DNA of 64,000 nt from Macrostomum lignano (Eukaryota): contig NIVC01003085.1 in NCBI GenBank assembly GCA_002269645.1, positions 56,492 to 120,491 on the forward strand, read 5' to 3'. Under the pieces are notes generated by a model. That model made no database searches, was not told where the DNA came from, and saw nothing but the letters and a program-made list of their open reading frames with translations. The stretch's first letter is position 1. Each line of letters begins with the position of its first letter. Positions 23,346-64,000 of the stretch are shown piece after piece. A program made the position numbers and the translations under genes.

Positions 23346-23347
23346 AG

Positions 23348-40600: not shown

Positions 40601-43600
40601 CATCTTGTAATCACCGTGGGCAAGAACTGCTGCAAGACGCCGTTCTACGTGATGGAAGGGCGGGGTGCCACATTACTCGGGCGCCAGGCCGCCTTTGAAC
40701 TCGGTTTGCTCGAAATTCGCCGGCCGAAGCAGCTCGCCGACGTCAGCGCTGTCGAAGCAAAACCTTCCGAATGATCCACAACTGAGGACAGTCTTGCAGA
40801 AGCACAAGAATTTCTTCACAGGGCTCGGCTGCGTCAAAGGCGTCGAGGTATCAGTGCGACTCCAAGAAGATGCCATCCCGGCCTGCCATCCACCAGCCCG
40901 AGTTCCGGTCCACCTAAAGACAGCAGTGGAAAAAGAGCTGCAGGGTTTACTGGACTTAGACGTCATCGAGCCGGTAACCGGTCCCACACCGTGGGTGTCT
41001 CGCATGGTCGTTGTACCGAAGTCGTCTGGAGGCGTCAGAATATGCCAAGACCTTCGAGACCTCAACAAATTTGTGATCCCGGAAAAGCAAGCCATACCCA
41101 CCTTGGACGAGGTCACAGAAGAGATGGCCGGAGCAACCCTATTCAGCGAGCTGGACATCTGCAAAGCATTCTACCAAATACCGGTGGATGAAGAAAGCCG
41201 ACACTTGTTCACATTCAGCACCCCCATCGGATTGATGCGGCTAAAGCGACTGAGCATGGGGTTTACAAGTGCCTCTGAAATCTTGCAGCGGATCATGTCA
41301 GGAGTGCTCAGCGGCCTCCCCGGAGTCCGGTGGATCCATGATGACGTCATAATATATGCGGACAGTATGCAGCAGCACAATCAGCGCCTTGACGACTGCC
41401 TCACTAGGCTCTCAGAGTGTGGACTCACGGTCAACCCGGAAAAATGCAAGTTCGCCAAAAGTTCCATCAGCTTCCTCGGCGTTACATTATCGGCCAAGGG
41501 CATTTCGGCGCCAGCTGAGAAAATCCAAGCAGTCCAGGATTTTCGACCACCAACCAACGCATCCGAGACTCGGTCCTTCCTGGGACTGGCGAATTATTTG
41601 TCAAAGTTCATCCCGAGCTTCGCCGACCTGACAGCCCCACTGCGCGAGCTAACCAAGAAGTGCAAGCGCTGGGAATGGACGACTCAGCATGCAGAGGCCT
41701 TCAACGCGTTGAAAAGCGCTATCAGCAAGCCAGAAACGCTGGCCTTCTTTGATTGCAATCGGTCCACAGAACTTGTCGTCGATGCTTCACCAATCGGACT
41801 GGGCGCAATTCTCAGCCAGAAGCAACCGAATGGCACCGTCAGGCCCGTCGCCTACGCCAGTCGAACTCTGACTCCAGTTGAGCAGCGCTACTCACAAATA
41901 GAGCGCGAGGCTTTGGCCGTAAAATTCGGCTGCCTTAAGTTCGACTTCTACTTGGCTGGCAATTCGAATTTTACCATCGTCACAGATCACAAGCCTCTGA
42001 TCCCGCTTTTTAAGCCGGGTTCACGGCCGCCGCCGAGAATTGAGCGAATGGCGCTCCGCATCCAACATCTTCAGTTCAAGCTCGAATACCGGCCCGGCGC
42101 ATCGAACCCGTCGGACCTTCTAAGCCGACAGCCGATGCCAACAGATCTGTCTCGTGCTATCGGTGAAACTCTAGACGCCGCCTACATCAACGCAGTGGTC
42201 AAAAGTGCTGTCCCCCGCGGTCTATCTCTAAAAGACTTCAAAACAGCTACCGGAAGCGACATGGACATCCAGGCTGCCATCACCGGCATCAAGACGCAGC
42301 ATTGGAACCAGCACAGCAGTACACAGCGAACCTTCAAAGGAATCGAGCACGAGCTATCAGAAAGCGACGGAGTTCTACTCCGCGGTGACTTGATCGTCGT
42401 GCCTTCATCGCTGCGGCGGCAGGTCTTAGCACTGGCACACACTGGACATCTCAGCGCCGAGCGGACACTCCAGCGGCTGCAGACCAAGGTGTGGTGGCCA
42501 GGGGTTCGAGCCGACTGCGAGGCATTCGTTCAAGCTTGTCTGCCATGTCAGGCCACATCCCACGCTACCTACCATGCGCCGCTGAGGCCTACAAAGATCC
42601 CGGATGGGGCCTGGCTCCTGCTAGGAATGGACTTCTATGGGCCCATCCAAGGACAGATGCTTCTCGTCACGACGGACCTGTTTTCTAAATATCCTGAAAT
42701 CAACTACGTCAGCTCAACATCAGCAGCAACAGTTATTCCTCACATACGACAGCTCTTCGCCCGCCACGGGGTCCCGCTGGAGCTGATCACAGACAACGGG
42801 CCGCCTTTCAGCTCGCACGAGTTCCGCGCTTTCCTGACCTCGTTCGGCGTCAAACACCGCCTCATCTGCCCGCTGCATCCTGAAGCCAACGGTGCCACCG
42901 AACGCGTCAATCGCTCAGTGAACAAAGTTGTCAGAGCCGCTATCGCTGAAGGTCGCTGCTGGAAAGAGGCGCTGGATGAGTGGCTCCTCGCATTCCAGGT
43001 GACGCCGCACAGAGCCACAGGCAAAGCGCCGGCTGAACTTCTGATGGGTCGCAGAGTTAACGACGTCATTCCATCGGTCAGACCATCACGGCGAGCCAGC
43101 TGGTCTACCAGTGACATCAAGAACCGGCACAACCGCTACAACGACAACATGAAGGCCGGCTTCGACAAGACCAAGCGGGTTCGACAGCACAGCATCCGGC
43201 CGGGTGACCGAGTCCTTCGACGGCAGAACAAGTCCAAGCTGCACACCCCGTTCGAACTGGAACCCTGGGTGGTCGAGTCCGTCAAAGGCGACACATTCAC
43301 TCTGCAACGGCAAGGACAGTCGTGCATGCGTCACCTGGTGCACATCCGGCCGGTTTCACAGCCGCTGCATCCGCCTGAAGCAGCGGCCGGCCAGCCGCCA
43401 GCCAGCGCGGGTCCCGCTGAAGCAGACGACGGCGAGTCAATCGCAATGCGCAGTCACTCGAGAAGAGCGCGAGACGCAGTGATTAACTACAAACTGTGAT
43501 TTAAAAAGAATTGACTGTCTAATATCATTAACTGTCGCCGCTGCCAATCGTTTTTTTGCGAATTCGTAGTCAGTTCAATATTTTTGTTTTAATGTCCCCA

Positions 43601-45816: not shown

Positions 45817-46380
45817 AGGGACTGAGGGACAAGGGACTGAGGGACAAGGGACTGAGGGACAAGGGACTGAGGGACAAGGGACTGAGGGACAAGGGACTGT
45901 AGGACAAGGGACTGAGGGACAAGAACTGAGGGATAAGGGACAAGGGACTGAGGGACAAGGGACTGTGGGACAAGGGACTGAGGGACAAGGGACTGAGGGA
46001 CAAGGGACTGTGGGACAAGCGACTGAGGGACAAGGGACAAGGGACTGAGGGACAAGGGACTGAGGGACAAGGGACTGAGGGACAAGGGACTGAGGGACAA
46101 GGGACTGAGGGACAAGGGACTGTGGGACAAGGGACTGAGGGACAAGGGACTGAGGGACAAGGGACTGAGGGACAAGGGACTGTAGGACAAGGGACTGAGG
46201 GACAAGGGACTGAGGGACAAGGGACTGAGGGACAAGGGACTGTGGGACAAGGGACTGAGGGACAAGGGACTGTGGGACAAGGGACTGAGGGACAAGGGAC
46301 TGAGGGACAAGGGACTGTGGGACAAGGGACTGAGGGACAAGGGACTGAGGGACAAGGGACTGAGGGACAGGGACTGAGGG
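45817..46380. repeat. 15-bp minisatellite (GGGACAAGGGACTGA) starting just after the MAO stop codon
   Basis: Seen directly. Confidence 0.95.
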
Positions 46381-47046
46381 AACTGGGATTGGAGCACAGG
46401 GATTTGTCGGCAAGGTTAGAAAGCAAGGACGTCAATTCGATGACAGGGACTCGGCGATCCAGGAATGTTATAAGACGGGATTGAAGTGAGGGCACCGAAA
46501 ACCAATAAATTTGAGTGGCCAATTGTGTCCATTCGAGCAGTTCATTCACTAATTCGATGGTAAATTTCAAATTTTGTTTTATTTTAACAGTACTTCATTA
46601 TCATGTCAAATAATAAAGTTTTAGCTGCTTAAATCATAAAATTTTTACCAATTTTTATTTATTTATTGCAAATCAAAACTGAATTCATAATTTTTATTCA
46701 AGTTTTCTGTAGAGACTGGCTGTACCAGAGTTCGCTTATTGTGTGTCTCGTGGATCAGTCAGGCTTAACTGACTTTTTATAAGATTCAAATTATATGATA
46801 ATATAAAATATTAATTCACAACTAGCATTTTGATTATAGAGCTAGCAAACTATATTTGTCATCTGGCGCATTTTATTTCGGTCAAGCATCATTATTAATC
46901 GTAAAACTTGTCGAACTTACGAGATTAGCTGTTTCTAAGGTGCGAATGACCGCGGCACCAGCGACCGAGCCCCGAGACCCAATCAGCAACTCAACCCAGC
47001 AGCCAGTCTCAAGAAGCCAGCAACCAAAGCACCCAGCTCAGCAGCC

Positions 47047-47334
47047 ATGTACAAGCTCATCTGCCTGTTCGCTCTCGTGGCCTTCGCCGCCGCCGCCTAC
47101 ACTCCGGAGCAGAAGAACGAGGTCGTGAACGACATCATTCACGAGGTCGTTCCCGTGCTCAGCATCGACACCAACTGCCTGCTGCAGAACGGCATCGACT
47201 CCGTGAACTGCCTGATCTCCAACCTGGCCTCCTGCTACTTCGCCCACGGCACCAACATCAGCCAGCTGGCCGGCTGCCTGGCCAACAAGTGCGGCGGCAG
47301 CGCCATCCAGATTCTCAGCTGCATCAAGCTGTAA
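47047..47334 (+). CDS. Small secreted six-cysteine protein, copy A (unknown family)
   Basis: Single-exon 95-aa ORF with a signal peptide ending AAA-AY; mature part C-x10-C-x7-C-x13-C-x4-C-x9-C; GC3-rich codons; conserved in five other copies. Confidence 0.88.
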   Translation: MYKLICLFALVAFAAAAYTPEQKNEVVNDIIHEVVPVLSIDTNCLLQNGIDSVNCLISNLASCYFAHGTNISQLAGCLANKCGGSAIQILSCIKL

Positions 47335-47500
47335 ATGCTCTGCTTGCTGTGTTCTCATAGATAGCTAGATTTCAAATACACTTTGGCTAAATCCAAATCA
47401 GGTGCCATATCTATTAATTAACTGCGATTCACACGCCAAGTCACCGAGAATGTAGATTCCTGACGATCAGAAAGTCAGGGCCGCTGTACAGCCTTGTGAG

Positions 47501-47503
<3 letters not shown>

Positions 47504-47538
<35 letters not shown>
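47504..47538. repeat. (TG)n microsatellite
   Basis: Seen directly. Confidence 0.95.
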
Positions 47539-47539
<1 letters not shown>

Positions 47540-47797
47540 TGCGTACAGTTTCCATCAAATCACATAGTGTACATTTTTCGGGCCTGTGATTCAATCTCTG
47601 TATTTTGTATATTTCTGAGACGGCTCTAACTGTAGGCAATTGAATGCGAACAAGAATACCTGTATATGAGATTCTAATATGAATACAGTTATAACAATGT
47701 CAATAATATTAATTACGATGATAATAACAATAATAAAAGCACAAGCGACTTCAGAAAGCATGTTCAATAACAGTGAAGTACCGCATTGGTGTGGCTG

Positions 47798-48355
47798 TCA
47801 CACTGCACTTTTAGCCTCCAGCCGCAGGCCGACAGTCAGCCAGCCGGTCGGGCTGACATAAACGCAGTCATCGCCGCTGAGGCGCTGGCTGTCCATCAGC
47901 ACAACGCCCTGACTGAGCACCGACAGGTCCTCCGGGGTGGCGGGTTGCGGCGCCAGCTGCAGCCGGGTCAGCGGCTCCCGGGCCAGCACCAGGTCGGGCA
48001 CGCCGGCTCGCTGACCGAAGACGGTCCAGGTGGCGAACAGGCGGCATTTCTGTGGAGCCGAGCTGCCGGGCCTCCGGTGCAGGTAGGCGACAAGAACGGC
48101 GGAGTCGTCTGCAGAGTCTGCAGGGCGCGGCCTGTCAGAGCACCGCTGGCGGAGCCGTCGAATCCGAATGGACAGCGACAGGCCGGCCAGCTGGAACACC
48201 TCCGAGTGCAGGTCGAGCGGCTGATCGGGCAACAGCAGCCGGTGCAGCGGCAGGTGCAGCTGGACCTCCGACATGGCAGCAGAGACTGGCGACGTCAGCA
48301 AGCTGCAGTCCGTGCCGCAGTCTGCAACAAGCTCACAGTCGACGGGACGAACCAT
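47798..48355 (-). CDS. Standalone MATH/TRAF-like domain protein (185 aa; second ATG at 48274)
   Basis: Open GC-rich frame with beta-strand spacing resembling MATH: SEVFQLAGLSLSIRI...LVAYLHR...CRLFATWTVFGQ...GVVLMDSQRL...YVSPTGWLTVGLRL. The domain call is by pattern only. Confidence 0.6.
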   Translation of the reverse strand: MVRPVDCELVADCGTDCSLLTSPVSAAMSEVQLHLPLHRLLLPDQPLDLHSEVFQLAGLSLSIRIRRLRQRCSDRPRPADSADDSAVLVAYLHRRPGSSAPQKCRLFATWTVFGQRAGVPDLVLAREPLTRLQLAPQPATPEDLSVLSQGVVLMDSQRLSGDDCVYVSPTGWLTVGLRLEAKSAV

Positions 48356-49619
48356 GCTGCTAAAAATGGGAACTTATTGAACTGATCTTTGTGTGTCTGA
48401 GAGGGAAAATTCGAACGCACGGCAGGTCGGCGGCAAACCGACGGGAATTCCGCGGAATTTCCGGCTTGCTTGCTTCTTAAAGAGTAAGACAGGCATAATA
48501 GCATGTGTTGTCGCTTCAGCTAGGATAGACGAACAAATTAAGCCTAGAACAGCGATGCCGAATTGGAGCATCTCATAAAAATAGTGTATAGAAAAAATGG
48601 CTTTGAGTACATACAATTGGCTGTCCCAGGATAGTCCGCGGAAATACGTTGGAATACGCGCGGGAATTCCGTGGAAAAACCCGCACAGTATAAATTAATA
48701 AATGTTTTCTGGGGAGTTCCGAACCACCGGCATGTCCGCATCTCTTCCCAAGCACTTCAAAGTCATCAACTGCTTTGCTTATTGGTTGCTCCAAAGCCCA
48801 TTGTGCCTAGTTTCGTTTGGGCCACAAACGATTGCGTCGACGGAAATTGTGAACTAAGTAAATTTTTGCGCGCCTTTCAGGCATCGAAACAGGAATACAA
48901 CAGATTGCTTATCTGCGAATAGTCTATGGTCAAGCCGCCCCCATCTTTGGATATTCCCAACGGGTTATATTTGGATATACCCATTTGCAGATGAGCAATC
49001 TGTATATTCCTGTATCAATGCGTTTGCGAGGATATTTTTTATTCAATACAACAAAGCTGAATAAACAGATTGTATACATGTACGAAAAGAAAAATAATAA
49101 GAAATGTCTTTAGACGTTACACTCACATCAGCCGAATTGCGTGGTTTGTTCCGCATGGAATCCTCGGGGCAAGCCTCTTCTTTGCTTGGCAGTGGTGGCA
49201 GAGCATCATCGTTACCGCATTCAATGAATAGGATGAACTCCATCAACTCTTCGTCATCCGCCTCGTCACGTTCACCCATACTCAAGTCGCTGAGAAAGTT
49301 GACCTCATTTCCATTCAAGCCGTCAATGCTTTCAATCGGCAAATTCGACCAATTTATCATTCGTATGAGTGGCATGAATAGAGGTTAGGGCAAACAGAAG
49401 AAACAGGAACATGTTATCCTCTGCTGCAGAGTTCCAGCTTATAAGACCACAACTTCATTTAACATGTTTCGTCTATGGTAATTTCAGGCTGCTCCGCTTA
49501 ACTTTTCGTTCCAGACGTTTAGTCTATGGCCATCATTTGGCTTGCACCAAGTGGAAAATGGGGAGTTGTGTCCTAGCCCTTTTGAATTGGTTTTTGGTCG
49601 AAAATAGACACAATTCCAC

Positions 49620-49717
49620 TATCGAGAGGTAACGCTTCACACACAACTGCCTTACCGCGTCTCGGCCTACCGGCCTCGACGCCATGGCAGTTGTGTGTGA
49701 AGCGTGACCTCTCGATA
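49620..49717. other. 98-nt near-perfect hairpin (32-bp stem, 1 mismatch, extra inner pairing)
   Basis: 49620-49651 TATCGAGAGGTAACGCTTCACACACAACTGCC pairs with 49686-49717 GGCAGTTGTGTGTGAAGCGTGACCTCTCGATA. Confidence 0.85.
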
Positions 49718-50109
49718 ATCATACATGGTTGGACCATAGAGTACTGAGAACTCTACAAAGGGTGCTAGCTGGGATAGTGATCGTTTGGGCACTACTTTCT
49801 ACAACAGCATCTAAATTGCCTAAAGCAGCAGGTAGTTTAAAAAAACTATCAATGGTCTAATTGAGTGTTGATTTTTTTCTCTAGCACTTTTATTAGCTGA
49901 GTTATGGCCCATCACGTGGTGATATCTATGGCCATAAATTGCAATTTCACTAGCTGCGGGTGACAGATTGCAGTCTAAAGCTGCAAATTGCAGCATCAAA
50001 TCTCAGTCTACCCTGCAATCCCTCTGCTTAATCAGTCTTTAAGCAAATCAGTTCAACAATTGGCACAAGTTAACCATTCAGTATGCTAAATTTTACTAAA
50101 CAACACAAG

Positions 50110-50238
50110 ATGGCATCAGCTTCAAAGAAAGACCTCAAACCAACAGTGCGTGGCATCATTCGCTTCTGGATTGACAGCGGACGCACAAATGTAGCTGAAA
50201 TGCACGCAGAGCTTGTTGCGACATATGGAGATGTTTGA
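50110..50238 (+). mobile_element. Mariner-like transposase N-terminal HTH remnant
   Basis: MASASKKDLKPTVRGIIRFWIDSGRTNVAEMHAELVATYGDV* resembles the first HTH of mariner transposases. Confidence 0.45.
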
Positions 50239-51832
50239 AGAATAGTTGTGTCCCCTTGACCCTCCAATCCTAGTGGCTTTAAACTTTTATCTTTCAGCAG
50301 CTGGTGAAAATCGCAATTTATCGAAAAAGGGCTGAAAAAATGCTAAAAAGTGGCCATAAAAGAGGGTCACTTTTAGTGGCTGAAGGAAGGACACTTTCAG
50401 TCCCTCACCAGCCACTTACAACCGGCCACCTCTCGACCACTTTTTCAGCCACTTTTAATTTACAGTGAATAATTTTATGACATGTTATTAAATGATTTTA
50501 AGGGATAGTAGGTATATTCTAACAAGCGAGTCGCCATCAAAGGTGTGCAATGGCACAAGCCCGGCCTGTGTACCTTTATGTCTGTTCTGTTGTTGAATTA
50601 ACGAAAGCAGAACAAGATAGATAATTATCTGGGCGCCCAGCGGCACCAAAAGAGGGCTTGGCCAATAGGAGGGCGGCTCTAGAAGGAAAGTTCTAGAAAG
50701 ACCGGGAGAGGAAACTTCTGGAACTATGCGTAAACAAGTCCTGCTGTGGAAGTTTCTAGAAACCCTGTCCCCGAACTACCCCTACGCATTGCATGCCTTT
50801 GCAATACACAACAATGTCAAAGTGTGGCGATGTTTCGGAGCGGTAAAAATTGTGCTCAGCATTGGCACAAGCGCACACTTTATAGACTCTGTGTTGAAAT
50901 AGACAGCGTAGTCTAAGTTTTGCGCATGCAGGAACTACTTATTCAAGTAGTCTACTACCCGGCCTAATATAGCCAAGCAGGCTGAAAGACAAAAGACAAA
51001 AGGCTGAAAAAATTGCACCTTATAACAGCAGCCAATCACGTCACCCGTGCTTCCCAGTGTGCCGCACTCCACAAAGTAAATCTCTACTTTCAAAAGCAAC
51101 TAAAACGGCTGACCTGAGTCCTTTCAGGGTATCTTTGACGGCATCTGCCTGGACAAGCGGCTCCATGAAGCCATGAAAAACTGTCATAGGATGCTACTCA
51201 AGATAGAGGCCATCGAGAAGATCAATGCGTCTAATTAAAAGGACGCTACGAGCTGCTTTTTTTGTTCTCTCCCGCTTCCAATGGACGAGCGTACAAGCCA
51301 TGCGTTTTAGTTAGCGTTAGGGTTAAAGCTTATAGCTTAAGAGGAGCTGCTGAGATGCCAGCAATCACTGTGGAATGCTTTTAACTTTGTCCTTAAGAAA
51401 CTAGCAATATAGTGACTGTAGAAGGCTGAGAAATACACAGTCATTTTAGCGCTAGTTCAAGGACGAACGACCCATCCTGACTAGCAAATGCATTGGAACT
51501 TTCCCACTTGTTTACGCGATAATTTACAAATATGAGCTGTCAATATTCGTTGCCGATTGGCTGCAAGGACTCCATTCTGCCTCTCAACCCACTGCCGCAC
51601 CCAATACGGAACCGTTCCGTTTAATGAGCAGTCGATCCTACTCTGCATTACTTCAATAAACAAAGAAACTCCAATGAGCTGATGTGGAATTCGAACTTAA
51701 TTTCTCTAATTTGTCGTTCGAAACTGAAAACCACCAACAGACCAAGTGAATTAATAGGTATTAAATCTGATTTCAACGTAGTCAAGTGTATTTGAAATCT
51801 AGCTATCTATGAGAGCACAGCCAGCAGAGCAT

Positions 51833-52048
51833 TTACAGCTTGATGCAGCTGATGATCTGGATGGCGTTGCCGCCGCACTTGCTGGCCAGGCAGGTGGCCA
51901 GCTTGCTGATGTTGGTGCCGCTGGAGAAGAAGCAGGTGATCAGGTTGCTCACCAGGCACGTCACGGAGTCGATGCCGTGCTGCAGGACTGTCAGGATTGA
52001 GCCGCCAGCTGTCATCAATAAGTCAGCCAAGTAGTCCCGCTTTGCCAT
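51833..52048 (-). pseudogene. Chimeric 5'-truncated copy (F) of the six-Cys family fused to antisense FANCL 3' sequence
   Basis: The C-terminal 50 aa (LQHGIDSVTCLVSNLITCFFSSGTNISKLATCLASKCGGNAIQIISCIKL) belong to the family. The N-terminal MAKRDYLADLLMTAGGSILTV is identical to 59685-59757. There is no signal peptide. Confidence 0.75.
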
Positions 52049-52715
52049 TCACTGCAAATCTTGTAGTAAACAAAAAGTGTCGAAGACAAGCCATGAATTT
52101 TATGCATTTGAACCCTGTGTCCGAGTTCGAGTTCCCACTTGCACTTTAAATTCTATCGCGTGCGACTAAATAAAAATATAAAGTCAATTAAACAGTGAGT
52201 TTTGATAGTTTAATTAATATTTAAGCTGGCGCTTTCCACTGTTCCAGATTGCGCTCAGCAACCGAATTGTATTTCTATGCATTGATAGAAAACTGCATTT
52301 ACAGCTTGATGCAGCTGAGGATCTGGATGGCGCTGCCGCCGCACTTGTTGGCCAGGCAGCCGGCCAGCTGGCTGATGTTGGTGCCGTGGGCGAAGTAGCA
52401 GGAGGCCAGGTTGGAGATCAGGCAGTTCACGGAGTCGATGCCGTTCTGCAGCAGGCAGTTGGTGTCGATGCTGATCACGGGAACGACTTCGTGAATGATG
52501 TCGTTCACGACCTCGTTCTTCTGCTCCGGAGTGTAGGCGGCGGCGGCGAAGGCCACGAGAGCGAACAGGCAGACGACGTTGTACATGGCTGCTGAGCTGG
52601 GTGCTTTGGTTGCTGGCTTCTTGAGACTGGCTGCTGGGTTGAGTTGCTGATTGGGTCTCGGGCTCGGTCGCTGGGCTCTCATTTATGGTGCCGCTGGTGC
52701 CGCTGCAGGTGACGC
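51976..52715 (-). repeat. Inverted segmental duplicate of ~59018-59757
   Basis: Promoter, CDS, 3' flank and the FANCL 3' end match in reverse complement. Confidence 0.85.
52299..52586 (-). CDS. Small secreted six-Cys protein, copy B
   Basis: 95-aa ORF MYNVVCLF...SCIKL, near-identical to copies A and D. Confidence 0.88.
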   Translation of the reverse strand: MYNVVCLFALVAFAAAAYTPEQKNEVVNDIIHEVVPVISIDTNCLLQNGIDSVNCLISNLASCYFAHGTNISQLAGCLANKCGGSAIQILSCIKL

Positions 52716-53059
52716 GGTCCCGGCCTGTCACGCCGCCCACGCCCTGCCAGAGGCAGCTAGTTCTTATCGCTTCAAATTGACTGACTGTCCTGCAGTCGCG
52801 GTTCAGCTTAATGTCTTCTCGAATGTTCTTGCAAGATGATTCAGCTGTTTTTGCGACCGCTTGAACTATTAGGGTTCTATTGACCGACAAATTCAACACC
52901 ATTAATAAAGCCCTCCGACAGCTCGGGTAAAAAAGGTGCAACAATGAGATGCATTCCTTTGAAAAAGCAGGACTTTGGCGAAGTATATTTATTGATCATT
53001 TTATCTTCTTGTCGTAAATTTTCCATCTTGTGCGCCAAGTTTTATATGCGCCAAGCCAA

Positions 53060-53725
53060 GAGACACACTTCATAATGTGCGCTTGTGTCACTGAGACACA
53101 CTTCATAATGTGCGCTTGTGTCACTGAGACACACTTCATAATGTGCGCTTGTGTCACTGAGACACACTTCATAATGTGCGCTTGTGTCACTGAGACACAC
53201 TTCATAATGTGCGCTTGTGTCACTGAGACACACTTCATAATGTGCGCTTGTATTATTGAGACACACTTCATAATGTGCGCTTGTGTTATTGAGACACACT
53301 TCATAATGTGCGCTTGTGTTATTGAGACACACTTCATAATGTGCGCTTGTATCACTGAGACACACTTCATAATGTGCACTAGTGTTATTGAGACACACTT
53401 CATAATGTGCGCTTGTGTTATTGAGACACACTTCATAATGTGCGCTTGTATCACTGAGACACACTTCATAATGTGCGCTTGTGTTATTGAGACACACTTC
53501 ATAATGTGCGCTTGTATCACTGAGACACACTTCATAATGTGCGCTTGTGTTATTGAGACACACTTCATAATGTGCGCTTGTATCACTGAGACACATTTCA
53601 TAATGTGCGCTTGTGTTATTGAGACACACTTCATAATGTGCGCTTGTATCACTGAGACACATTTCATAATGTGCGCTTGTGTTATTGAGACACACTTCAT
53701 AATGTGCGCTTGTATTATTGAGACA
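53060..53725. repeat. 33-bp tandem repeat (GAGACACACTTCATAATGTGCGCTTGTGTCACT), ~20 copies
   Basis: Seen directly; source of the 11-aa-repeat ORFs. Confidence 0.95.
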
Positions 53726-54299
53726 GCCTTCGGCTTTTGTGATTTATACGAATAGCTCCCTCGAAAGGCATGTTTAATCTTCTACATAAAACATGGACAT
53801 GTTTTATGGACAATTTTCGGGGCAATGTTGAATCTAACCAAATAGAATCCTGGAAAAGGGAAATAATGTCTTTGGAAATCAGTATAACTATACAAATGGT
53901 TGTCTTAATGGCATTTTCTTAAGGATCAAACAGAAACGTTCGGGTTGTTTTGTTTGGGTTATTTTGAGCATAAAAAGACTCGACTGTAATTAAGCATTCC
54001 CAATTTTAAAATCAGGATTCCAAAAGTTATTTCAGAAGATATATAACTTCTACAAAAGGAAACAGCATTGCTTTCTCATTTTTACGAGCGTGTTCGAAGT
54101 TTTCTCACTTACTATTTTATTGAAGTGATTGCATTAATGTAGATACTGCATTCTTGTCCATAGAAATCGGAATTATTTTTCTCCCATTTTGGCTAAACTG
54201 TTACAGCGCAAATGTCACCCTGTAAATCGCTATAATGACAGGAAATTGAGTAAACTCAGCCCCCATCAAGCGTCCCTCAGCTGGGATAGCCATCGCCCA

Positions 54300-55170
54300 A
54301 ATTTTTCACCCGAGGCCTTTGCATGGCCATCCAAATTGCTGCTTCTCCCACCAGCCTCCGGCCTGACGTCCGCCCCAGCCGAGTCCTTCTACTTCACTCC
54401 AATCATCATGGACGAGGTCGCTAAGGTCCTGGAGGCAATGCGAGCGGACGCTCCGTCTGGAGTTGACGGAATCCGCCCCGAGAGTGCTGAAGTTGCCTGA
54501 GCTGCTTGGCACCGTGACCAACCGCCTGCTCAACCGCCTTGGTGGGGACGAGTCCGCCTCTGCCACCAAGCAGTGGAAGACTTCAAAGATCATCTCCATC
54601 CCCAAGAAAGGCAACTCCACCAGACTAGACAACCGGCGCGGGATTGCAATCTCCCAAAAGCGCTGAACGCCGTGCTGAGAAACCGCGCCTGCTCCCAGCG
54701 CTCAGCTCGCGCATGCCAGCTTTTCAGAGTGGTTTTTTTCTGGCAGATCAACTACTGAGCAGGTGGCGGCAATCATCATCGACTTCCGCAAAGCCTTTGA
54801 TTCTGTCAGCCGGCTGGCCATAGCCTGGCTGCTCGCTCAGCATGGAGTGCCACCTCTGCTTGTGCGGGCAGTCATGGACGTGTACAGCAGTTCTATGGCC
54901 TTCCAAGCATCCGATGGACCCACTGCAGAGTTTCCAACCTACGTGCCCCGAAGGACTCTGCAGGAAGAGGATGGCTTTTTGGTCACCCAGTGCCACGTCT
55001 CGCAGCATCCCGAGGTTTGACTCTCCTGCCTGATGCTGACCTTACGCGCCCTGGCCGTGAAATTAGTGGAAAACCTTAGTTGGCCAAACTGGCCCATATC
55101 GCTGGTGACAGGTCTGACAGGCTGTGGCGCGGCCGTGTCACGACAGTGTCCCAGACTGTTGTTCCGCTGC
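54300..55170 (+). mobile_element. Degenerate LINE (RTE-like) RT fragment with an inverted 3' piece
   Basis: APSGVDGIRPE, QWKTSKIISIPKKGN...NRRGIA and IIIDFRKAFDSVSR...LLAQHGVP in shifted frames; a minus-strand LGHCR...QPV segment at ~55000-55170. Confidence 0.75.
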
Positions 55171-55339
55171 ATGAGTATGCTAATTAGGAAGCGTGTAAAT
55201 TAGCTCTATACTACGCTCATACGCACAGATAAGGGAAGGAAACGCTACTTGCAGAGCCTTCTGTGACAGTTCTGACAGCTTTAACGGATTGCGCGCGGTG
55301 CTGCAGTCCGAGACCGCGTCACCTGCAGCGCCACCAGCG

Positions 55340-55350
55340 GCACCATAAAT
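55340..55350 (+). promoter_or_regulatory. TATA-like element (CCATAAAT) within a conserved upstream block of copies B, C and D
   Basis: gaccgcgtcacctg.agcg.caccagcggcaccataaat is shared upstream of copies B, C and D, about 100 bp before the ATG. Function is inferred. Confidence 0.5.
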
Positions 55351-55444
55351 GAGAGCCCAGCGACCGAGCCCGAGACCCAATCAGCAACTCAACCCAGCAG
55401 CCAGTCTCAAGAAGCCAGCAACCAAAGCACCCAGCTCAGCAGCC

Positions 55445-55732
55445 ATGTACAAGCTCGTCTGTCTGTTCGCTCTCGTGGCCTTCGCCGCCGCCGCCTACAC
55501 TCCGGAGCAGAAGAACGAGGTCGTGAACGACATCATTCACGAGGTCGTTCCCGTGATCAGCATCGACACCAACTGCTTGAAGCAGAACGGCATCAGCTCC
55601 GTGAACTGCCTGATCTCCAACCTGGCGACCTGCTACTTCGCCCACGGCACCAACATCAGCCAGCTGGCCGGCTGCCTGGCCAACAAGTGCGGCGGCAGCG
55701 CCATCCAGATTCTCAGCTGCATCAAGCTGTAA
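55445..55732 (+). CDS. Small secreted six-Cys protein, copy C
   Basis: 95-aa ORF MYKLVCLF...CLKQNGISSVNC...LATC...SCIKL. Confidence 0.88.
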   Translation: MYKLVCLFALVAFAAAAYTPEQKNEVVNDIIHEVVPVISIDTNCLKQNGISSVNCLISNLATCYFAHGTNISQLAGCLANKCGGSAIQILSCIKL

Positions 55733-56357
55733 ATGTTTCGGTATTGAGGCTATAAAATAAACTTAAAGTACAATATTAACAACGATCTTACTTTACTAAT
55801 AACTGAATTTCTTTTCTGAGTGCATTTTTTGTTTAGACTTGTTGGTATAACAAAGTTAAGAAAACTGGAAACTTTATATCCCCAGATAAGTTAAAGAATT
55901 GTCTGATCAAAGGGTGTCTTTAGTTAAAACAAATTAATTTATTGGTGTTCTCGGATTTATCAACCAGCTGCTACAGCAATAACACCCTCGATCTGCTATT
56001 ACTGCTCCTGGATAACTAGTGCTCAAGGACTACTAAAGTAACGTAATTGTTCCAGTGGTCCTAGCCTACGCGCTTTATCACTGACGATTGCAGAAAACAA
56101 GGCTTTGACAATTGCTTTGTCAGATACTGCTGGCGAAAATGCTTGCAGTTGATGCTGCTGATAAAATTCTCTCCTAGGGCAATTCCATGTCACCGCTAAC
56201 ATTTGGTCATCTTCACCCAATTGTCAATATTCACCCAAGATGTCCTGTGTTCTTAAGTCGTCCTTGAATACAAGCGATTGTGCGATCGAGACTGATTGAA
56301 GCGAATAAATCTGAAGGGCAACTTGCAGCATGTAGCGGAGAACTAGCTGTAAGTTTG

Positions 56358-56815
56358 CGGCACAGATACTATAGAATGACTGGATGGGCCACTCAGCACA
56401 TTTGCGTGTAGGCTACTTTCAGTTCAGTAGTAAGTTAAACAGAAGCATTTGAATTCCAAAGCTCGTTTATTGGGTCTTACCCACCAGCTTAAACCCTCCA
56501 ACCGCGCCTTTCCACACGACACCAACCCCCCCCCCCGCCCCGCCCCAATTTTTATTGCCTTTCTCGGAATTTCAGCCTAAAGCTGCCATGTACACTTCAG
56601 TGGACTGGCTAATGTACATTACTGCTGAACCAATTAGCAAGTTGCTTACGCCTGCAGGCTTGGGATTCTAAACTTATCAGTCATTTCAGCTGCCTTTATT
56701 TTTATAAATAGCTTATATATTCTTCTTTGCTACTGAACTGAAAGTAGAAAGCTGTTTTACTAAGTATTTATGGCTGAGTGGCCCATCCAGTTAGTTTAGC
56801 ATCTGTGGTCTGCGG
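56358..56815. mobile_element. MITE-like element with imperfect inverted ends
   Basis: actggatgggccactcagc and ctactttcagttcagtag (56375-56430) recur inverted at 56725-56795. Confidence 0.6.
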
Positions 56816-57749
56816 GCAGAAAACTACAAGCAGAAGACGAACCACCATGAGAAAGGTGACAATAACCGTCGCGATAGAGAGAAACTAAAAAACTTAAAAA
56901 ATCAGGGAAACAAGTACTTGTATAGCTTGTTGCTTCAGAAATAATTCCCGCAAGAACATAACAGGCTCATCCACGCTGCGCTATCAAATTAGGCGATTTA
57001 TGTGTGTTGTTATTCCTTGTAGCTATGTACTTTTTCGTTGCTTTGCACATTATCCGATTTGTTCAATTTGACAGCGCGTAACTTGATGGCGGCGAGAAGT
57101 ATCTAGATCTAGTTTTAAAATTATTTTGCAGAAAATTCCAAATGTTCAATCTGATTGATTTATCGAGCCAGAATAGTAATAATAATAAAACTGATTACAC
57201 CTCCCTGATTACACGATTGTTATCGAGCTTGACAATTAAAGGCTTGTGGCATAGACCAGAGATAGAGACCGCGTCAAGGCATTTCACGGCATAATGGCTA
57301 CCTAACAAAGAAATCAGTGCATGTCCAATCACAGCTAGTCTGAAGCGCTCTAAAGTCCACGGCTCGTATACCTGCCCGCGTGCATCACATCGTTGATAAA
57401 ATACCATGCTTCCCGAAGAAAGCTAGATCACAAACCCGAAATATCATAGCTCCGAAAACCAAAATAGCGTTAGGCGTTGCTAGCATTCGGAGTTATGATG
57501 TTTCCGGTTTATGATATGGAAAGCACTTTTTAGAGTTGTAATTTTTCGGGTTTGCGATGCCCTCCCAGACATGGGGTGGACGAACTTTGGAACATCTTTG
57601 GAACGATTCACTAGAAATTTTAAACTAAGTCCTTTATGCTACCATATGTATGTCTCCAAAGTATAGCCAAACTACTTGACAAAGTTGCGAAATTATTTTT
57701 AGATTCTGCATTCACAAGCGCCGACAACATGCACTGAGAAATAATTATT

Positions 57750-58787
57750 TACTATGGCTACAAGAGGTTTAAGACAGCAAAAGAGCTTTGAGGAACTTTA
57801 GGCAGTTTTTGGCAATAAAGTACCTTCCACTACCACAGTTTTTGAGTGGTTTGCCGAAGTTCGACATAGCCGACGGAGTCTGGATGATGAAGACTGCAGC
57901 GGCTGGCCCACCTCCGCAGCAAGGGATGAGAATATGAGTGCTGCTATTCAGGCCATGACTAAGAATGATGCCAGGGTAACTGTGGCCCAGATGGAGGCAG
58001 AAGTGGGCATCTCATCGGCAGCCATCCGCACGATTCTGCACTCAAGGCTCAACCTGAGCAAGATTTCTGCACGCTGGGTGCCTCATCACCTGACAGAGGA
58101 GCAAAAGGAGGCTCGGGTGGCTTGGTGCCATGCCATGCTCGACAGATTCGATGGTGGCCGCTCAAACTGGATCTGGGAAATCGTCAGTGGTGAAGAATCC
58201 TGGATCTACAGTTTTGACCCAGAGACCACACGCAGCAGTCGACACAGTGAACACCAGTTAAAGGTGCCCCACGTGGGGCAGCGTGGCAAAGCAGATGTTG
58301 GCCGTTTTTGTGACGAAAGCAGCGCACAGTCACTGGCAACTGGCGTACCGACTACTGCCTGTCAGAAGTGCTGAGTGCTCTCTCCAATTGCCGTTTAAGG
58401 ACTCGAGCTCGGGGTGTGCTTCTTCATCACAACGCCCCGCCCACAAGTCCAGGCAAGTGGTCGAATTTCTGGCTGGAGAACACATTCAAGAGCTCCGCTA
58501 TCCACCCTACAGCACAGACCTGGCCCCGCGCGAGTTCTTTGTGTTTCCGCAAACCGAGCAGAAGATGCAAGGCAGTCGCTATTCATCGCCGGAAGCTGCA
58601 GTCGAGGCCTTCATCAAGCATGTCAAGGGGGTGCCAAGTTCAGTGGTCCAGCTGCTTCAATAAGTGGTATGAGAGGATGCAATGGTGCATAGATTCTTAT
58701 GGAGAGTACCTTAAAAAAATATGACTGTCAGTTGCTCTCCAACTATTTCAGACTTCGCACATCCAGAAACTTATTGCACACCCCTCC
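57750..58787 (+). mobile_element. Degenerate mariner transposon (transposase pseudogene, right TIR only)
   Basis: TTVFEWFAEV...SLDDED.SG.P, ISARWVPHHLTEEQK, VSGEESWIY (D to E), LLHHNAP (D to N) and YPPYSTDLAPREFFVF, with frameshifts. The right end AAACTTATTGCACACCCCTCC is followed by TA. Confidence 0.85.
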
Positions 58788-59146
58788 TAAAAACTTGGTT
58801 TCGGAAAACCGCCGACAGTGCAAAATATTTGTGAATTAAGCAGCATGCGCTGATAATCTGACAGCAGCGCAGGCAACAAGACTGTCAAATACCAAAACGC
58901 ATGATAAGAGATGAGATATTGGAAACCACTAAACAGCAGACAAAATAAACCGGTTAAAAACTTTGTGACAGTTCTGACAGCTTTAACGGACTGCGCGCGG
59001 TGCGGCTGTCCGAGACCGCGTCACCTGTAGCGCCACCAGCGGCACCATAAATGAGAGCCCAGCGACCGAGCCCGAGACCCAATCAGCAACTCAACCCAGC
59101 AGCCAGTCTCAAGAAGCCAGCAACCAAAGCACCCAGCTCAGCAGCC

Positions 59147-59434
59147 ATGTACAACGTCGTCTGCCTGTTCGCTCTCGTGGCCTTCGCCGCCGCCGCCTAC
59201 ACTCCGGAGCAGAAGAACGAGGTCGTGAACGACATCATTCACGAGGTCGTTCCCGTGCTCAGCATCGACACCAACTGCCTGCTGCAGAACGGCATCGGCT
59301 CCGTGAACTGCCTGATCTCCAACCTGGCCTCCTGCTACTTCGCCCACGGCACCAACATCAGCCAGCTGGCCGGCTGCCTGGCCAACAAGTGCGGCGGCAG
59401 CGCCATCCAGATTCTCAGCTGCATCAAGCTGTAA
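59147..59434 (+). CDS. Small secreted six-Cys protein, copy D
   Basis: 95-aa ORF; 4 nt differ from copy A and 2 nt from copy B. Confidence 0.88.
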   Translation: MYNVVCLFALVAFAAAAYTPEQKNEVVNDIIHEVVPVLSIDTNCLLQNGIGSVNCLISNLASCYFAHGTNISQLAGCLANKCGGSAIQILSCIKL

Positions 59435-59732
59435 ATGCATTTTTCTATCAATGCATAGAAATACAATTTGGTTGCTGAGCGCAATCTGGAACAGTTGAAA
59501 GCGCCAGCTAAAATATTAATTAAACTATCAAAACTCACTGTTTAATTGACTTTATATTTTTATTTTGTCGCACGCGATAGAATTTAAAGTGCAAGTGGGA
59601 ACTCGAACTCGGACACAGGGTTCAAATGCATAAAATTCATGGCTTGTCTTCGACACTTTTTGTTTACTACAAGATTTGCAGTGAATGGCAAAGCGGGACT
59701 ACTTGGCTGACTTATTGATGACAGCTGGCGGC

Positions 59733-61999
59733 TCAATCCTGACAGTCCTGCAGCACGCACAGCCTCGCCCTGCAGTAGGGGCAGCAGCCGTGCAGTCGGT
59801 TGAAGCCCTGCCGAGTGTCCGGCAGGCCGCGCAGCCACTCCACTGCGCAGCTGCGGTGGTAGCGACGCCGGCAGCGCTCGCAAGTGACGCAGTCGGGACC
59901 ATCGGCGGAGCAGTCAGCGTAGCAGATGCCGCAGTCGACATCCTCGGTAGCGGCCTCGACGCCAGCATCGCCCGCCACCGGCTGCTCGGTCTCGACGGCT
60001 GAAGGCTCGGCAAGCAAGGCGGAGCCGCCCAGCAGAGCTCTCAGGTTGGACACAAAGTCCGCGACGTCCGCGCCTGCTTTCCAGGCGGCGGAGTTGGCGG
60101 TCACGGCCACTTCGATGGCCTCGGCAGCCGGACCTGCGGCACTGACGGATGGCAGGGCAGCCGGGCTGGCGTCGGGGTCCAGCCTGATCAGCAGGCTGCT
60201 GGCGCGGCTGCGGGGAGTTGGAGCTGCCTCCGCATCAATATGATGTAGTTTTTGTTTTAGTGCGCGATGGCGGCTATTTAGGGTATTCAGTATCTGAGCA
60301 CACCTGGGGCCGACCTCATGAAGATGGCAGTTGCAATCTTCAACAAAAGGATTTGCCATAGACAAAACAGCCTCTGCTAAATCCGATTGCATGTTGGAGA
60401 TTGGAAGCGGACCTGGACTTCTTGAGCTTTAGGTACATAAAATACTTCCGATTTTTTCGCCAGAGTCTTAGAGCAAAAAACTGCAAAAATTACCTTCAGA
60501 GTTAACAGGAGCTTAATTTGTTAATCTCCTATGTAATTAGTGATAATTTGATATAAGCAGGTTCGGAGAATTTTGTGTTTGAAATTTGAAGTTTTTTTGG
60601 AATCATATCTTTCAACTGTAAAAAATTTCCAAAATTTGATGAAATTATTCTAATAAAAACATTTAGAGGGTTCAAATTTTAACTCCGATAAAAATAGTGT
60701 CTATTCTAATTTAAATATGCTGACTCAGGGTTCGCCACCCGCCCCTTACCTCCCGCTTTTTGATTTGCTGTCGTTCTCTCATTGTTGTGCCGACTAGCCG
60801 TACATTCTTTACTTGTTTACCTATACTAACTTTTACTAATCTGCCTTGTCTCCATTCAAAAGTTAACTACAGCTGCTGATGTCAATTAGTTTTGATAGGA
60901 TTGTCATTTTTTCTTCATGGAGGTGTTTGATGGCTTGCCGAATTTTTTATTTAAGCCCATCCCTCAGTCTCCGAATTTATCTACCTAATCTACAATAGAC
61001 TCCCATGCTTCTGTTGAAGTTTATGTACATAAAATCAATCCCCATGAAGATTCTCCCCACCCTAAAACCCCCCATTCCCTATGCCCCGGTGGTTGGTTTG
61101 AAGCTACGAAAAAACGAAGCTCAAATTTGAAATCAGCACCATCAAAAACCTCTAAAGGAACAAAATTATGATCCTATCAAAACTGCAACAATTTTATACC
61201 TACCTAAAGCTCAAGAAGTCCGCGGAGCTGTGTAGTGCAAAAATGCAAATATTTGATTAAAAACTCAGCTAGAGTCGCCAGTTGCTCAGCAAAAGCCACT
61301 CACTCGGCCAGCAGCACCCGTCGGTGAAGCGAGCGTCTACGCTGGGCCGGCCGCGGCTCAAGCACGACCAGCCGGCTGTCCAGCTGCTCCAGCAGCTCCC
61401 AGTGCGGCAGCAGCGACCGCGACGCCCCGGCGAACCGGTCGAACAGGCGCCGCAGGCTGCCGTCACCGCCACCGCCGCCGGGATCGGAACTGGCAGCTCC
61501 GAGTCGACGAGGCAGAAATTGGGACAGTCGCCAACATCGGCGGCAACGCGAAGCCGGACGCCCTCCGGGCTGATCAGAGTGGCCGAGGCAAAGTCGGGCG
61601 ACACGGACTCGATGCAGCCGAGCCCGACGGTCAGGAGTTCGCGCCCGGCGCGGGCCAACCAGCGCCGATGGCGCAGACGATCGGTCGAAACAGACACCGT
61701 CACGTCCTCGGCCGGCGCGGCAGCCTCTTCACCCGGAGTCATCGGGCGTTGAAGCAGGTCGCGCGCCGTCGCCAGCATTTCGTCGGGGTTTTCTGGTGGC
61801 GCGGCCGCCTCGGCCAGCACTGACCGGCCGGACTCGGCGAAGGCCAGCAGGCCACAGCGGCGCGGCTCCACGGCTAGCAGAAGACGGCCGATATCGGCGC
61901 CGCCGGGATTCGAACTCGGATCGTGATTCGGCTGCTGCTGCTCCGCCGCGCAGGCAGCGGCAGAAGCAGCCAATGAGCAGCTGTGGCGCTGATTGAGGA
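59733..61999 (-). CDS. FANCL: Fanconi anaemia group L E3 ubiquitin ligase (two exons; two apparent 1-bp frameshifts in exon 1)
   Basis: Exon 2 (60207-59733): SLLIRLDP...LP, NSAAW...NLRALL, RING DCGICY...C..C...YHRSCAVEWLRGLPDTRQGFNRLHGCCPYC. Exon 1 (~61999-61304): WLLLPL, GCIESVSPDFASATL, ELPVP, SLRRLFDRF...HWELLEQLDSRLVVLEP...RRVLL. The intron is phase 2 (GTGAGT...CCGCAG). Confidence 0.85.
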
Positions 62000-62354
62000 C
62001 TGAAGAGCAGTGAATGGTTTGCACTGTGCATTTGTACAGCTCGTATACTCGGACAGGTAGCGAATCCAGGTGCCCACCCCGTGGCATTCCAGTATATACA
62101 CAGTGCCGCTTATTTTCAGGGACACTGGCGCTGGCAGGGGTGCCTCCATGGATTTTTATGGCGTGGGGGGCGAAACTTATTTTGTCGCCCGAAGGAAAAC
62201 TCTTGGTTTCACTTGATTTCACTATTGATTTCTGCTAGCCTGTGTTCTGAGGCTATAGCAGAACACTAGCCTCTTTTGCTAGTGGTCCTGGGATAAAAAG
62301 CATTGGCATATCCCCCTGTCTCCCCTGGTGACGACGTCCCTGAGCGCTAATCTA

Positions 62355-62825
62355 CAGACATCGGCGCTTGTCTAGAGATACCTACGCTAAGCTAGAGACA
62401 TTGGCGCCTGTCTAGAGAAACTGGCGCTAGTCTAGAGACACTGGTGCTAGGCTAGAGACACTGGTGCTAGGCTAGAGACACTGGTGCTAGGCTAGAGACA
62501 CTGGTGCTAGGCTAGAGACACTGGTGCTAGGCTAGAGACACTGGTGCTAGGCTAGAGACACTGGTGCTAGGCTAGAGACACTGGTGCTAGGCTAGAGACA
62601 CTGGTGCTAGGCTAGAGACACTGGTGCTAGGCTAGAGACACTGGTGCTAGGCTAGAGACACTGGTGCTAGGCTAAAAACATTGGGGCTACTCTAGAGACA
62701 TTGGCACTTGTCTAGACATACTGGCACGTATCTAGAGATATTGGCGTTAGTCGAGAGACACTGCGCTAGTCTAAAAACATTGGGGCTAATCTAGAGACAT
62801 TGGCGCTTGTCTAGAGATACTGGCG
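62355..62825. repeat. 20-bp minisatellite (CTAGAGACACTGGTGCTAGG)
   Basis: Seen directly. Confidence 0.92.
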
Positions 62826-63447
62826 TTAGTCGAGAGATATTGGCGTAAATAGCATGTAAAAACTCTATAAACACTAGAAGCCCCTTAAAGACGCTGGAAT
62901 AACGGGATTATGTCTCCCTGACCAATAAAACCTTGTGTGTACAAAGTAGACAAAGATAACCCCGATCCTCAAGACAAAAAAGCTCACAACACACTACAAT
63001 AGATAATTAGACTTTGGTAGTCACAGAAATGCACCCTTACATGCTTGTGGATCCCCTTGTGATCAAATTGCGGAATGAAGCTCTTAAAGTGTCGAAAAAT
63101 CTGCTTAGAAAATATGCGACTACTAAATTCGACTAGCAGTCGGCAAGCGAACGCTGACAGTCGAGCTGCATTATCTTGACAGCTGACTTGAAAAAAAAAC
63201 ATGACAAAGGGCGTCAGTAGAAAAGCTGGCAGTGTCTCACCGTCACTTAGCAGCAAGCGGTCTGACCCGACAGGCCGTGGGCGGACCAACAATTTGCGGT
63301 GGAGTGGGGGGGGTCAATCAAAAACTGCGTCACCTGCGACTTATTCAGACATTTAGGAGTATTTCAATATGCATTCGGGGGCAAAGGCTGACTGAGCGAC
63401 GGACCCAAGCCTGTGCCATCAGCACCAAAGCACCCAGCTCAGCAGCC

Positions 63448-63735
63448 ATGTACAAGCTCCTCTGCCTGTTCGCTCTCGTGGCCTTTGCCGCCGCCGCCTA
63501 CACTCCGGAGCAGAAGAACGAGGTCGTGAACGACATCATTCACGAGGTCGTTCCCGTGCTCCGATTGGACACCATCTGCTTGCAGCAGAACGGCATCACA
63601 TCCGTGACCTGCATCGTGACCAGCCTGCTGGTCTGCTTCGTCTCCAATGGCAACAACATCAACGAACTGGCTGCCTGCCTGGCCAGCAAGTGCGGCAGCA
63701 GCGCCAGCCAGATCATCAGCTGCATCAAGCTGTAG
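63448..63735 (+). CDS. Small secreted six-Cys protein, divergent copy E
   Basis: 95 aa. The first ~38 residues are nearly identical to copies A-D; the rest is diverged (RLDTICLQQNGITSVTCIVTSLLVCFVSNGNNINELAACLASKCGSSASQIISCIKL), with all 6 Cys at the same spacing. Confidence 0.88.
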   Translation: MYKLLCLFALVAFAAAAYTPEQKNEVVNDIIHEVVPVLRLDTICLQQNGITSVTCIVTSLLVCFVSNGNNINELAACLASKCGSSASQIISCIKL

Positions 63736-64000
63736 AGGCCCAGCTTCAACGATGCAGTCTGATTGAAAGCAAATTAAAAATACACGGCCCACCTGCGTGA
63801 CTGGTACAGCTCACTGCAGCTTGCCGCAGCGCGAAATGCATTTACTTGCTTTTGTAGACAAAGCCTTGCCTTTCTGATAGCTCTATTGATATTCATAAAG
63901 CTTTTCGTTTTAGAAAATTAGGATTCTTTGTTAATTTTATATCCTACATGTAATTGTACATGTCCTGTGCCTAAAAATCATTATAAATGGCACGACCCGG

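Follow-up and report, generated by a model that had tools for sequence, protein, structure and literature searches.

Five intact genes and one truncated gene for a small secreted six-cysteine protein form a genuine tandem cluster within a 64,000-nucleotide stretch of Macrostomum lignano DNA (assembly GCA_002269645.1, contig NIVC01003085.1, positions 56,492 to 120,491 of the forward strand), and named members of the family were found only in Macrostomum lignano. The whole stretch is referred to below as the window, and its position 64000 is the end of the contig. On balance, the protein would be an abundant, acidic, hydrophobic and helical secretion produced throughout the body, and the evidence leans somewhat towards a lipid- or membrane-related role in mucus or defence. 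The secretion, the disulfides, the tissue of production and the biochemical activity of the family protein are what we infer.

The gene copies and their transcription units

The list of open reading frames (ORFs) and a tblastn search with six diverse family members as queries agree on the content of the window: five intact ORFs of 95 aa and one 5'-truncated chimeric ORF (Table 1), with no family locus beyond these six and none at positions 1-46000. The first-pass annotation, which was made from the sequence alone and had proposed five intact single-exon copies and one chimera within 17 kb, each intact copy with a signal peptide and an invariant cysteine spacing, is borne out on all of these points. 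The coding sequence (CDS) is unbroken in the family copies, and copy 4 stands in GenBank as a single 288-nt interval. All five intact copies share the spacing C-x10-C-x7-C-x13-C-x4-C-x9-C, of which the truncated copy retains only the last five cysteines, and the N-terminus (MYKLxCLFALVAFAAAA, followed by YTPEQ) has, as read from the sequence, the classic n/h/c layout of a predicted signal peptide with an AxA cleavage motif. Copies 1-4 are mutually 95-96% identical at the protein level, and copy 5 is 74% identical.

Each locus looks like a complete, compact and intronless transcription unit of ~0.5 kb, as judged from the coincidence of promoter motifs, a poly(A) hexamer and the GC content at third codon positions (GC3). 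Self-BLAST showed that the block common to the copies spans only ~380-480 bp, starting at about -190, -130 or -89 from the ATG and ending 4 nt past the stop codon; in copy 1 it begins at -89 (46958) and likewise ends 4 nt past the stop, and a solitary copy on another contig (locus L006 on NIVC01001252.1, encoding P0003) has the same short block. Three upstream elements are common to copies 2, 3 and 4 and the L006 copy, and are looser in a diverged copy at locus L001: TGACAG repeats or a GTGGGCGG box, a CGTCA/E-box-like motif (C/T)GCGTCA(C/G)CTG, and a TATA-like motif that precedes the ATG by ~100 nt (CATAAATGAGAG in copies 2-4 and L006, CATAAAT in L001). The first two of these are retained in copy 5, and none of the conserved promoter motifs is present in copy 1, because its homology begins only at -89.

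Downstream, AATACA or AATAAA lies 24-55 nt past the stop codon in every copy, including the truncated copy and those on other contigs, against a background of 0.28 AATACA per kb. The GC3 of the family CDS is 0.89-0.95, compared with 0.59-0.72 in other ORFs of the window, and the GC content of the flanks is 0.32-0.56. The annotated 127-aa models (MRAQRPSP...) start at an in-frame upstream ATG that overlaps the TATA-like motif, which makes the 95-aa ORF with its N-terminal signal peptide the likely product; the 5' untranslated region of each gene would be ~70 nt long.

Table 1. Family loci in the window, with their coding parts and putative control elements (window coordinates)
Feature	Extent	Strand	Coding part	Poly(A) hexamer	Promoter elements	Remark
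Copy 1	46958..47380	+	47047-47334 (95 aa)	AATACA 47375-47380		
Copy 2	51976..52740	-	52299-52586	AATACA 52268-52273	TATA-like CATAAATGAGAG 52676-52687; CGCGTCACCTG 52706-52716; GC box 52733-52740	
Copy 3	55258..55761	+	55445-55732	AATAAA 55756-55761	TGACAG x2 55264-55278; CGCGTCACCTG 55315-55325; TATA-like motif 55344-55355	
Copy 4	58961..59757	+	59147-59434	AATACA 59460-59465	TGACAG x2 58966-58980; CGCGTCACCTG 59017-59027; TATA-like motif 59046-59057	
Copy 5	63277..63784	+	63448-63735	AATACA 63779-63784	GC box 63277-63284; TGCGTCACCTG 63326-63336	Diverged subtype, 74% aa identity
5'-truncated copy	51745..51988	-	51836-51988 (coding remnant)	AATACA 51787-51792		Residues ~45-95
Chimera ORF	51833-52048	-	71 aa			C-terminal 48 residues belong to the family

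History and reality of the cluster

An inverted duplication of 748 bp (51976-52723 versus 59757-59010, 98.4% identity) includes copies 2 and 4; it stretches between the copy 4 promoter and the 3' end of a FANCL-like ORF, and the 3' flank of copy 4, up to the end of that ORF, is the source or the partner of the duplication. The FANCL-like ORF follows copy 4 immediately on its 3' side in tail-to-tail orientation, and the last codons and 3' end of this ORF fall within the duplication; it comprises 219 aa (59733-60392, minus strand, possibly extending to ~62222) and contains the FANCL C-terminal RING domain (E=3e-15). The inverted copy adjoins an older, 5'-truncated member (51745-51985; it matches copy 1 over 47182-47423 at 85.5% identity, a span that takes in 89 bp of 3' flank), and this abutment has created the chimera ORF, the first 24 codons of which are the antisense of the FANCL 3' end and the remainder of which corresponds to family residues ~48-95.

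Copy 5 has a mosaic structure, with near identity to copies 1-4 between -27 and about +115 and ~22% divergence elsewhere; compared with copy 1, there are 2 differences in the first 114 coding nucleotides and 38 in the remaining 171, a pattern best explained by gene conversion. Recent small duplications together with gene conversion would thus keep the copies alike over promoter and CDS alone. Retroposition was rejected as the mechanism of duplication, because the promoters were copied along and no remnant of a poly(A) tail is present. Carriage of the gene units by a transposable element was considered as a further possibility. The DNA between the copies contains satellites, the FANCL-like RING ORF and a Tc1/mariner-like remnant. 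The latter is a transposase remnant between copies 3 and 4 (57934-58724, plus strand), with a weak HTH_Tnp_Tc3_2 match below the Pfam cut-off and a frame that is broken over three overlapping ORFs.

The flanks of the copies are unrelated and the copies occur in both orientations, so that the five copies of the window are real paralogues, neither collapsed nor uncollapsed haplotypes. Over the last 18.6 kb of its own contig, NIVC01003085.1, the window sequence is 100% identical. The same cluster recurs at the ends of two further contigs, NIVC01000671.1 (99.92%) and NIVC01004760.1 (99.3-99.4%), and assembly-wide counts of family genes are therefore inflated by redundancy. The first-pass caveat that the copies might be uncollapsed haplotypes or assembly artefacts does not apply within the window.

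It is scarcely credible that the amplification is itself an artefact, produced by uncollapsed haplotypes or mis-joined reads at a true locus of one or two genes, and the data largely exclude it. The occurrence of the same cluster on three contigs at 99.3-100% identity, in a region rich in satellites and transposable elements, would fit such an origin. However, the copies of the window differ in protein by 1-26%, with 3-5 kb of unique or transposable-element sequence between them, and the gene order is the same on the two other contigs, each of which spans copies 2-5, although the annotation of NIVC01004760.1 names only copies 2, 3 and 5 of that span.

The protein and its evolution

The predicted cleavage after AAA would yield a mature protein of 78 aa and 8.3 kDa with an isoelectric point (pI) of ~5 and a grand average of hydropathy (GRAVY) of +0.4. 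An AlphaFold2 (AF2) model of the mature sequence, calculated with 10 family members, reached a predicted local distance difference test (pLDDT) of 81 and a predicted template modelling score (pTM) of 0.66, with helices at residues 3-17, 25-30, 36-50, 54-65 and 69-73. This model, with the mature sequence and more paralogues, is the one used throughout; an earlier run that included the signal peptide had a pLDDT of 65 and gave uninformative Foldseek output. The six cysteines presumably form three disulfides. The first-pass view of a secreted, helical, disulfide-bonded protein therefore holds as far as predicted secretion, the helices of the model and the richness in cysteine are concerned, and the disulfides are putative.

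One subtype of paralogues (P0021, Mlig019425, Mlig026862) is devoid of the acidic N-terminal helix, which would thus be dispensable in that subtype, and the conserved module is therefore the cysteine-rich core of ~55 aa. For residues 39-95, the ratio of nonsynonymous to synonymous substitution rates (dN/dS) between copies 1-4 and either copy 5 or P0004 is 0.8-1.3 (1.0-1.3 against copy 5), on the basis of ~8 synonymous and ~30 non-synonymous changes, and all cysteines are kept; against P0004, the ratio for residues 1-38 is 0.2-0.3. Non-cysteine positions of the core would accordingly evolve, between subtypes, about as fast as synonymous sites. These ratios show a core that changes fast around a fixed scaffold, and positive selection is not proven by these counts. 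The diversifying selection proposed at first pass does not follow from them, because a dN/dS of ~1 derived from few changes is also compatible with relaxed constraint.

Relatives and comparison with known families

Homologues were sought by word-seeded searches over 5.8 billion proteins, with a single sequence and then with a family profile, and by an exhaustive search with a hidden Markov model (HMM) over 1.84 billion representatives. All named homologues in these searches belong to M. lignano and form at least 6 diverged subtypes (BOX15_Mlig018888, 013012, 000320, 003595, 003912, 004736, 021740, 025334, 029556, 019425 and 026862, plus two WormBase-derived entries). The cysteine spacing is retained in the diverged paralogues P0004, P0019 and P0021, and P0020 has x11 in place of x13. 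The homologue P0004, which is 68% identical, lies on two short genomic-looking Logan contigs, and exact-protein look-ups aimed at RNA-derived contigs retrieved genomic contigs only. The Logan contig L001 (SRR31628394), which carries P0004, ends in a tRNA-like sequence at 1120-1179 (…GGTTCGAATCCC). Three further matches of the search over 1.84 billion representatives (P0023-P0025) were rejected as low-complexity or repeat false positives.

It should be noted that the annotated P0003 (L006, 10001-10384 of NIVC01001252.1) is without 8 residues (NDIIHEVV) that the ORF in the genome encodes. Two direct CGAGGTCGT repeats flank the 24 nt concerned, and variation between transcripts, slippage that deleted them from another copy, or an artefact of annotation could account for the gap.

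The first-pass annotation had not recognised the family and regarded it as undescribed, and both statements stand. Pfam searches with single members and with 7 members yielded only noise at E<=10, as did PDB sequence searches with one protein and with the family profile (e.g. topoisomerase, SecB). A Foldseek search of the AF2 model against 350,542 PDB chains gave 32 matches at E<=10, all with E >3, with a best query-normalised TM-score of 0.41, and no match was obtained in the viral BFVD library. No paper on the family was found, and its gene IDs and peptide strings are mentioned in none of the papers retrieved, though the genes stand in GenBank as hypothetical proteins.

UniRef carries the automatic name 'Saposin B-type domain-containing protein' for P0005, P0007 and P0020, which suggests that the automatic rule for the PROSITE profile PS50015 fired, and the link to saposins therefore had to be tested. 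As a positive control, human saposin C alone (a query identical to 2GTG) retrieved saposins A-D, SP-B, AOAH, amoebapore A, NK-lysin and caenopore-5 from the PDB. By contrast, the family HMM found no saposin-like protein (SAPLIP) among PDB sequences at E<=10, 7 members had no match to Pfam SapB_1 (PF05184) or SapB_2 (PF03489) at E<=10, and hhalign assigned a probability of 0.09% to the alignment of the family with a six-member SAPLIP alignment (four of the six sequences being unverified). The 32 Foldseek matches of the model, which was built from a shallow alignment, include no saposin entry, and the bundle of 4-5 helices closed by the N- and C-terminal helices, which characterizes the saposin fold, was not recovered in that search.

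The resemblance to SAPLIPs is one of general build: a secreted mature domain of ~78-80 aa that consists entirely of helices, is hydrophobic or amphipathic in character and has six cysteines, the first C-x10-C of the family equalling C3-x10-C4 of the aligned saposins. However, the other four cysteines are spaced otherwise, and the family pattern departs from the SAPLIP arrangement C-x2/3-C ... C-x~10-C ... C-x5-C. In SAPLIPs, C1 and C2 lie in the first helix and are paired with C6 and C5 in the last helix (cysteines at 5, 8, 36, 47, 72 and 78 of the alignment), whereas the first helix of the family is free of cysteines, all of which lie in the C-terminal 50 residues, and one subtype is missing the N-terminal helix altogether. 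Because Pfam, PDB, profile-profile and Foldseek comparisons all give nothing, the UniProt name was not reproduced. A divergent SAPLIP, lipid-binding or pore-forming in the manner of amoebapore, NK-lysin or saposin, is thus unlikely and the family is not filed as such, although a SAPLIP-like way of working by lipid or membrane binding is plausible.

As a kind rather than a homology family, the cluster belongs to the taxon-restricted tandem families of secreted cysteine-rich proteins, on the basis of the predicted signal peptide, the invariant cysteines, a core dN/dS of ~1, six loci in 17 kb plus those on other contigs, and named hits in M. lignano only. A conserved leader and a variable mature region mark other lineage-restricted tandem families of small cysteine-rich secreted peptides, such as MgCRP-I of Mytilus (PMC4558851), and also precursors of the conotoxin or antimicrobial-peptide type. 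The M. lignano family shares with MgCRP-I and conotoxin-type families a conserved signal and N-terminal region, a fast cysteine-rich region with six invariant cysteines, gene amplification and taxonomic restriction. In contrast to these small cationic knottins or beta-rich peptides, it is predicted to be all-helical, acidic and hydrophobic; it is also intronless, has no dibasic propeptide cleavage site and shows no sequence relationship.

The CHH/ITP/MIH hormones, with the spacing C-x15/16-C-x2-C-x12-C-x3-C-x8-C, are also secreted helical proteins of ~72-78 aa with six cysteines, and the x13, x4 and x9 of the family resemble their x12, x3 and x8. However, x10 and x7 differ from x15-16 and x2, no Pfam Crust_neurohorm match was obtained, and no CHH, MIH or HAND-toxin is among the Foldseek matches, so that membership was rejected.

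Expression

The GenBank gene models of the assembly derive from RNA-seq assemblies, from which novel transcripts below 0.5 reads per kilobase per million (RPKM) and without overlap to an earlier de novo transcriptome were discarded (PMC5730564); the existence of BOX15 models therefore implies transcripts. Quantitative data for the family entry Mlig000320 were taken from Brand et al. 2020 (PMC7336406, Tables S6, S8-S10). The two genes in question, Mlig000320.g3 and Mlig000320.g4, are both 288 nt long, and g4 corresponds to P0007. Of the positional fragments counted, A is presumably the head only and D the whole worm, partly according to the table legend and partly as reportedly defined in Arbore et al. 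2015. In fragments A, B, C and D, respectively, g3 had 3790, 7938, 5935 and 3873 reads and g4 had 3806, 7806, 5528 and 3575, compared with tens to hundreds of reads for most genes listed alongside them (PMC7336406). Both are classed as 'Non-Specific', with no neoblast or germline annotation, and the contrasts of octets with isolated or paired worms were not significant (baseMean 1706 and 919, adjusted p 0.76 and 0.33; PMC7336406). Taken together, this is strong evidence that close paralogues of the window copies are very highly expressed throughout the body.

The same data bear on a reproductive role, which the first-pass annotation had listed as an option, i.e. a seminal-fluid or prostate family under sexual selection. 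Small, secreted, rapidly evolving, lineage-restricted and tandemly duplicated proteins would suit such a role, and seminal-fluid candidates of M. lignano are typically orphans of this sort (PMC5977470). However, high expression throughout the body that is unresponsive to social group size argues against a role specific to prostate, tail or gonads: the paralogues are not classed as 'Tail', and the head-only fragment A has ~3800 reads, equal to whole worms. In addition, no family peptide or DNA string was found in the examined supplements of the in situ hybridization screen for seminal-fluid proteins, and searches of the supplements of that screen, an ageing paper, an aneuploidy paper and Grudniewska 2018 gave no match to the family. 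A seminal-fluid function is thus disfavoured, highly improbable and largely excluded by the data.

A proposed bulk secretion acting on lipids or membranes

Since transcripts of the paralogues rank with the most abundant and occur body-wide, the protein would be made in bulk by a secretory tissue that extends through the body (epidermal or rhabdite-type gland cells, other glands or gut) and then released. Amplification of the genes would serve dosage; of the two pressures named at first pass, dosage or diversifying selection, the former is in keeping with the high expression of paralogues, and the latter is undemonstrated. To judge from the combination of hydrophobicity, helicity and a disulfide scaffold, the likeliest action is that the protein binds lipids, membranes or hydrophobic ligands in mucus or in defence of the surface; its mode of action might then resemble that of saposin-like or lipid-transfer-type proteins, although it would not itself be one of them. 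An antimicrobial function, another first-pass option, is not favoured in its classical form, because the mature protein is acidic (pI ~5) and hydrophobic, unlike a classical cationic antimicrobial peptide.

Several points weigh against this proposal. The acidic pI speaks against a classical cationic antimicrobial mechanism as the means of defence, and a dN/dS near 1 could reflect relaxed constraint rather than an arms race. The expression data belong to paralogues that are ~85% identical to the window copies, and the reads multi-map and give no activity per copy; copy 1 has no conserved promoter at all. A tissue localization of the family was sought in published data and none was found. Furthermore, the signal peptide and the disulfides are predictions, and the AF2 model was built on only 10 closely related sequences.

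One alternative is that the protein acts as a chemical signal, borne by water or passed on by contact, in the manner of a pheromone; it would be a small helical disulfide protein that diversifies between subtypes. Aplysia attractin and the Euplotes pheromones are small helical disulfide-bonded signals. The family protein is likewise small, acidic, helical and predicted to be secreted, with three putative disulfides, its core changes fast around fixed cysteines, and its named homologues are restricted to one species. However, very high body-wide mRNA levels are unusual for a signalling ligand, expression is indifferent to social group size, and Pfam, the PDB profile search and Foldseek revealed no similarity to a known pheromone family. 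A signalling function is thus quite unlikely, and bulk secretion with binding of lipids or membranes is retained as the preferred proposal. It is also possible, though this is put forward only tentatively, that the family represents an undescribed disulfide-stabilized helical fold that arose within Macrostomum and is a major bulk secretion of the surface, be it a component of rhabdites, mucus or glands or a released cue. Literature linking Macrostomum to saposin was searched for, and nothing relevant was found.

Neighbouring features of the window

An apparently very young Ty3/gypsy-type retrotransposon with long terminal repeats (LTRs) lies at 39238-44021. Besides a gag-like ORF with zf-CCHC (39645-40319), it has a pol ORF at 40665-43499 (RVT_1, RNase H, integrase). 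The two LTRs, of 231 bp each, are 100% identical, and the element is inserted in an array of a 34-bp satellite, which resumes beyond either end (36753-39239, 44022-44425). A flavin amine-oxidase domain is encoded by an ORF at 44406-45521 (plus strand), and a 506-aa amine-oxidase gene in GenBank runs over the start of locus L004 (positions 1-429, about 45379-45807 of the window). Tandem-repeat arrays occupy 13481-15724, 19322-20332 (46-bp unit), 21646-23346, 29184-29753, 45817-46381 (15-bp unit), 53060-53725 (33-bp unit) and 62340-62846; several reading frames of these arrays contain long spurious ORFs, and such arrays fit a genome as rich in repeats as that of M. lignano.

Implications

The family is new, and its type is a familiar one, that of secreted cysteine-rich proteins which are restricted to one lineage and whose genes are amplified in tandem; its fold may be new. 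It is one of many such lineage-restricted families in animals, and nothing in it points to a new biological principle. The cluster is nevertheless a clear small-scale case of concerted evolution that is limited to promoter and CDS. In addition, the compact promoter-CDS units (~500 bp, TATA-containing and highly expressed) could be employed in transgenesis as strong promoters.

In M. lignano, a flatworm model open to transgenesis and RNA interference, an orphan family that ranks with the most abundant transcripts but has neither a recognisable fold nor a described function is a gap in annotation. To our knowledge, the protein composition of flatworm surface secretions is poorly characterized. 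If the proteins of this family do have a new fold and are secreted in bulk at the surface, they would provide a molecular handle on the surface secretions of flatworms.

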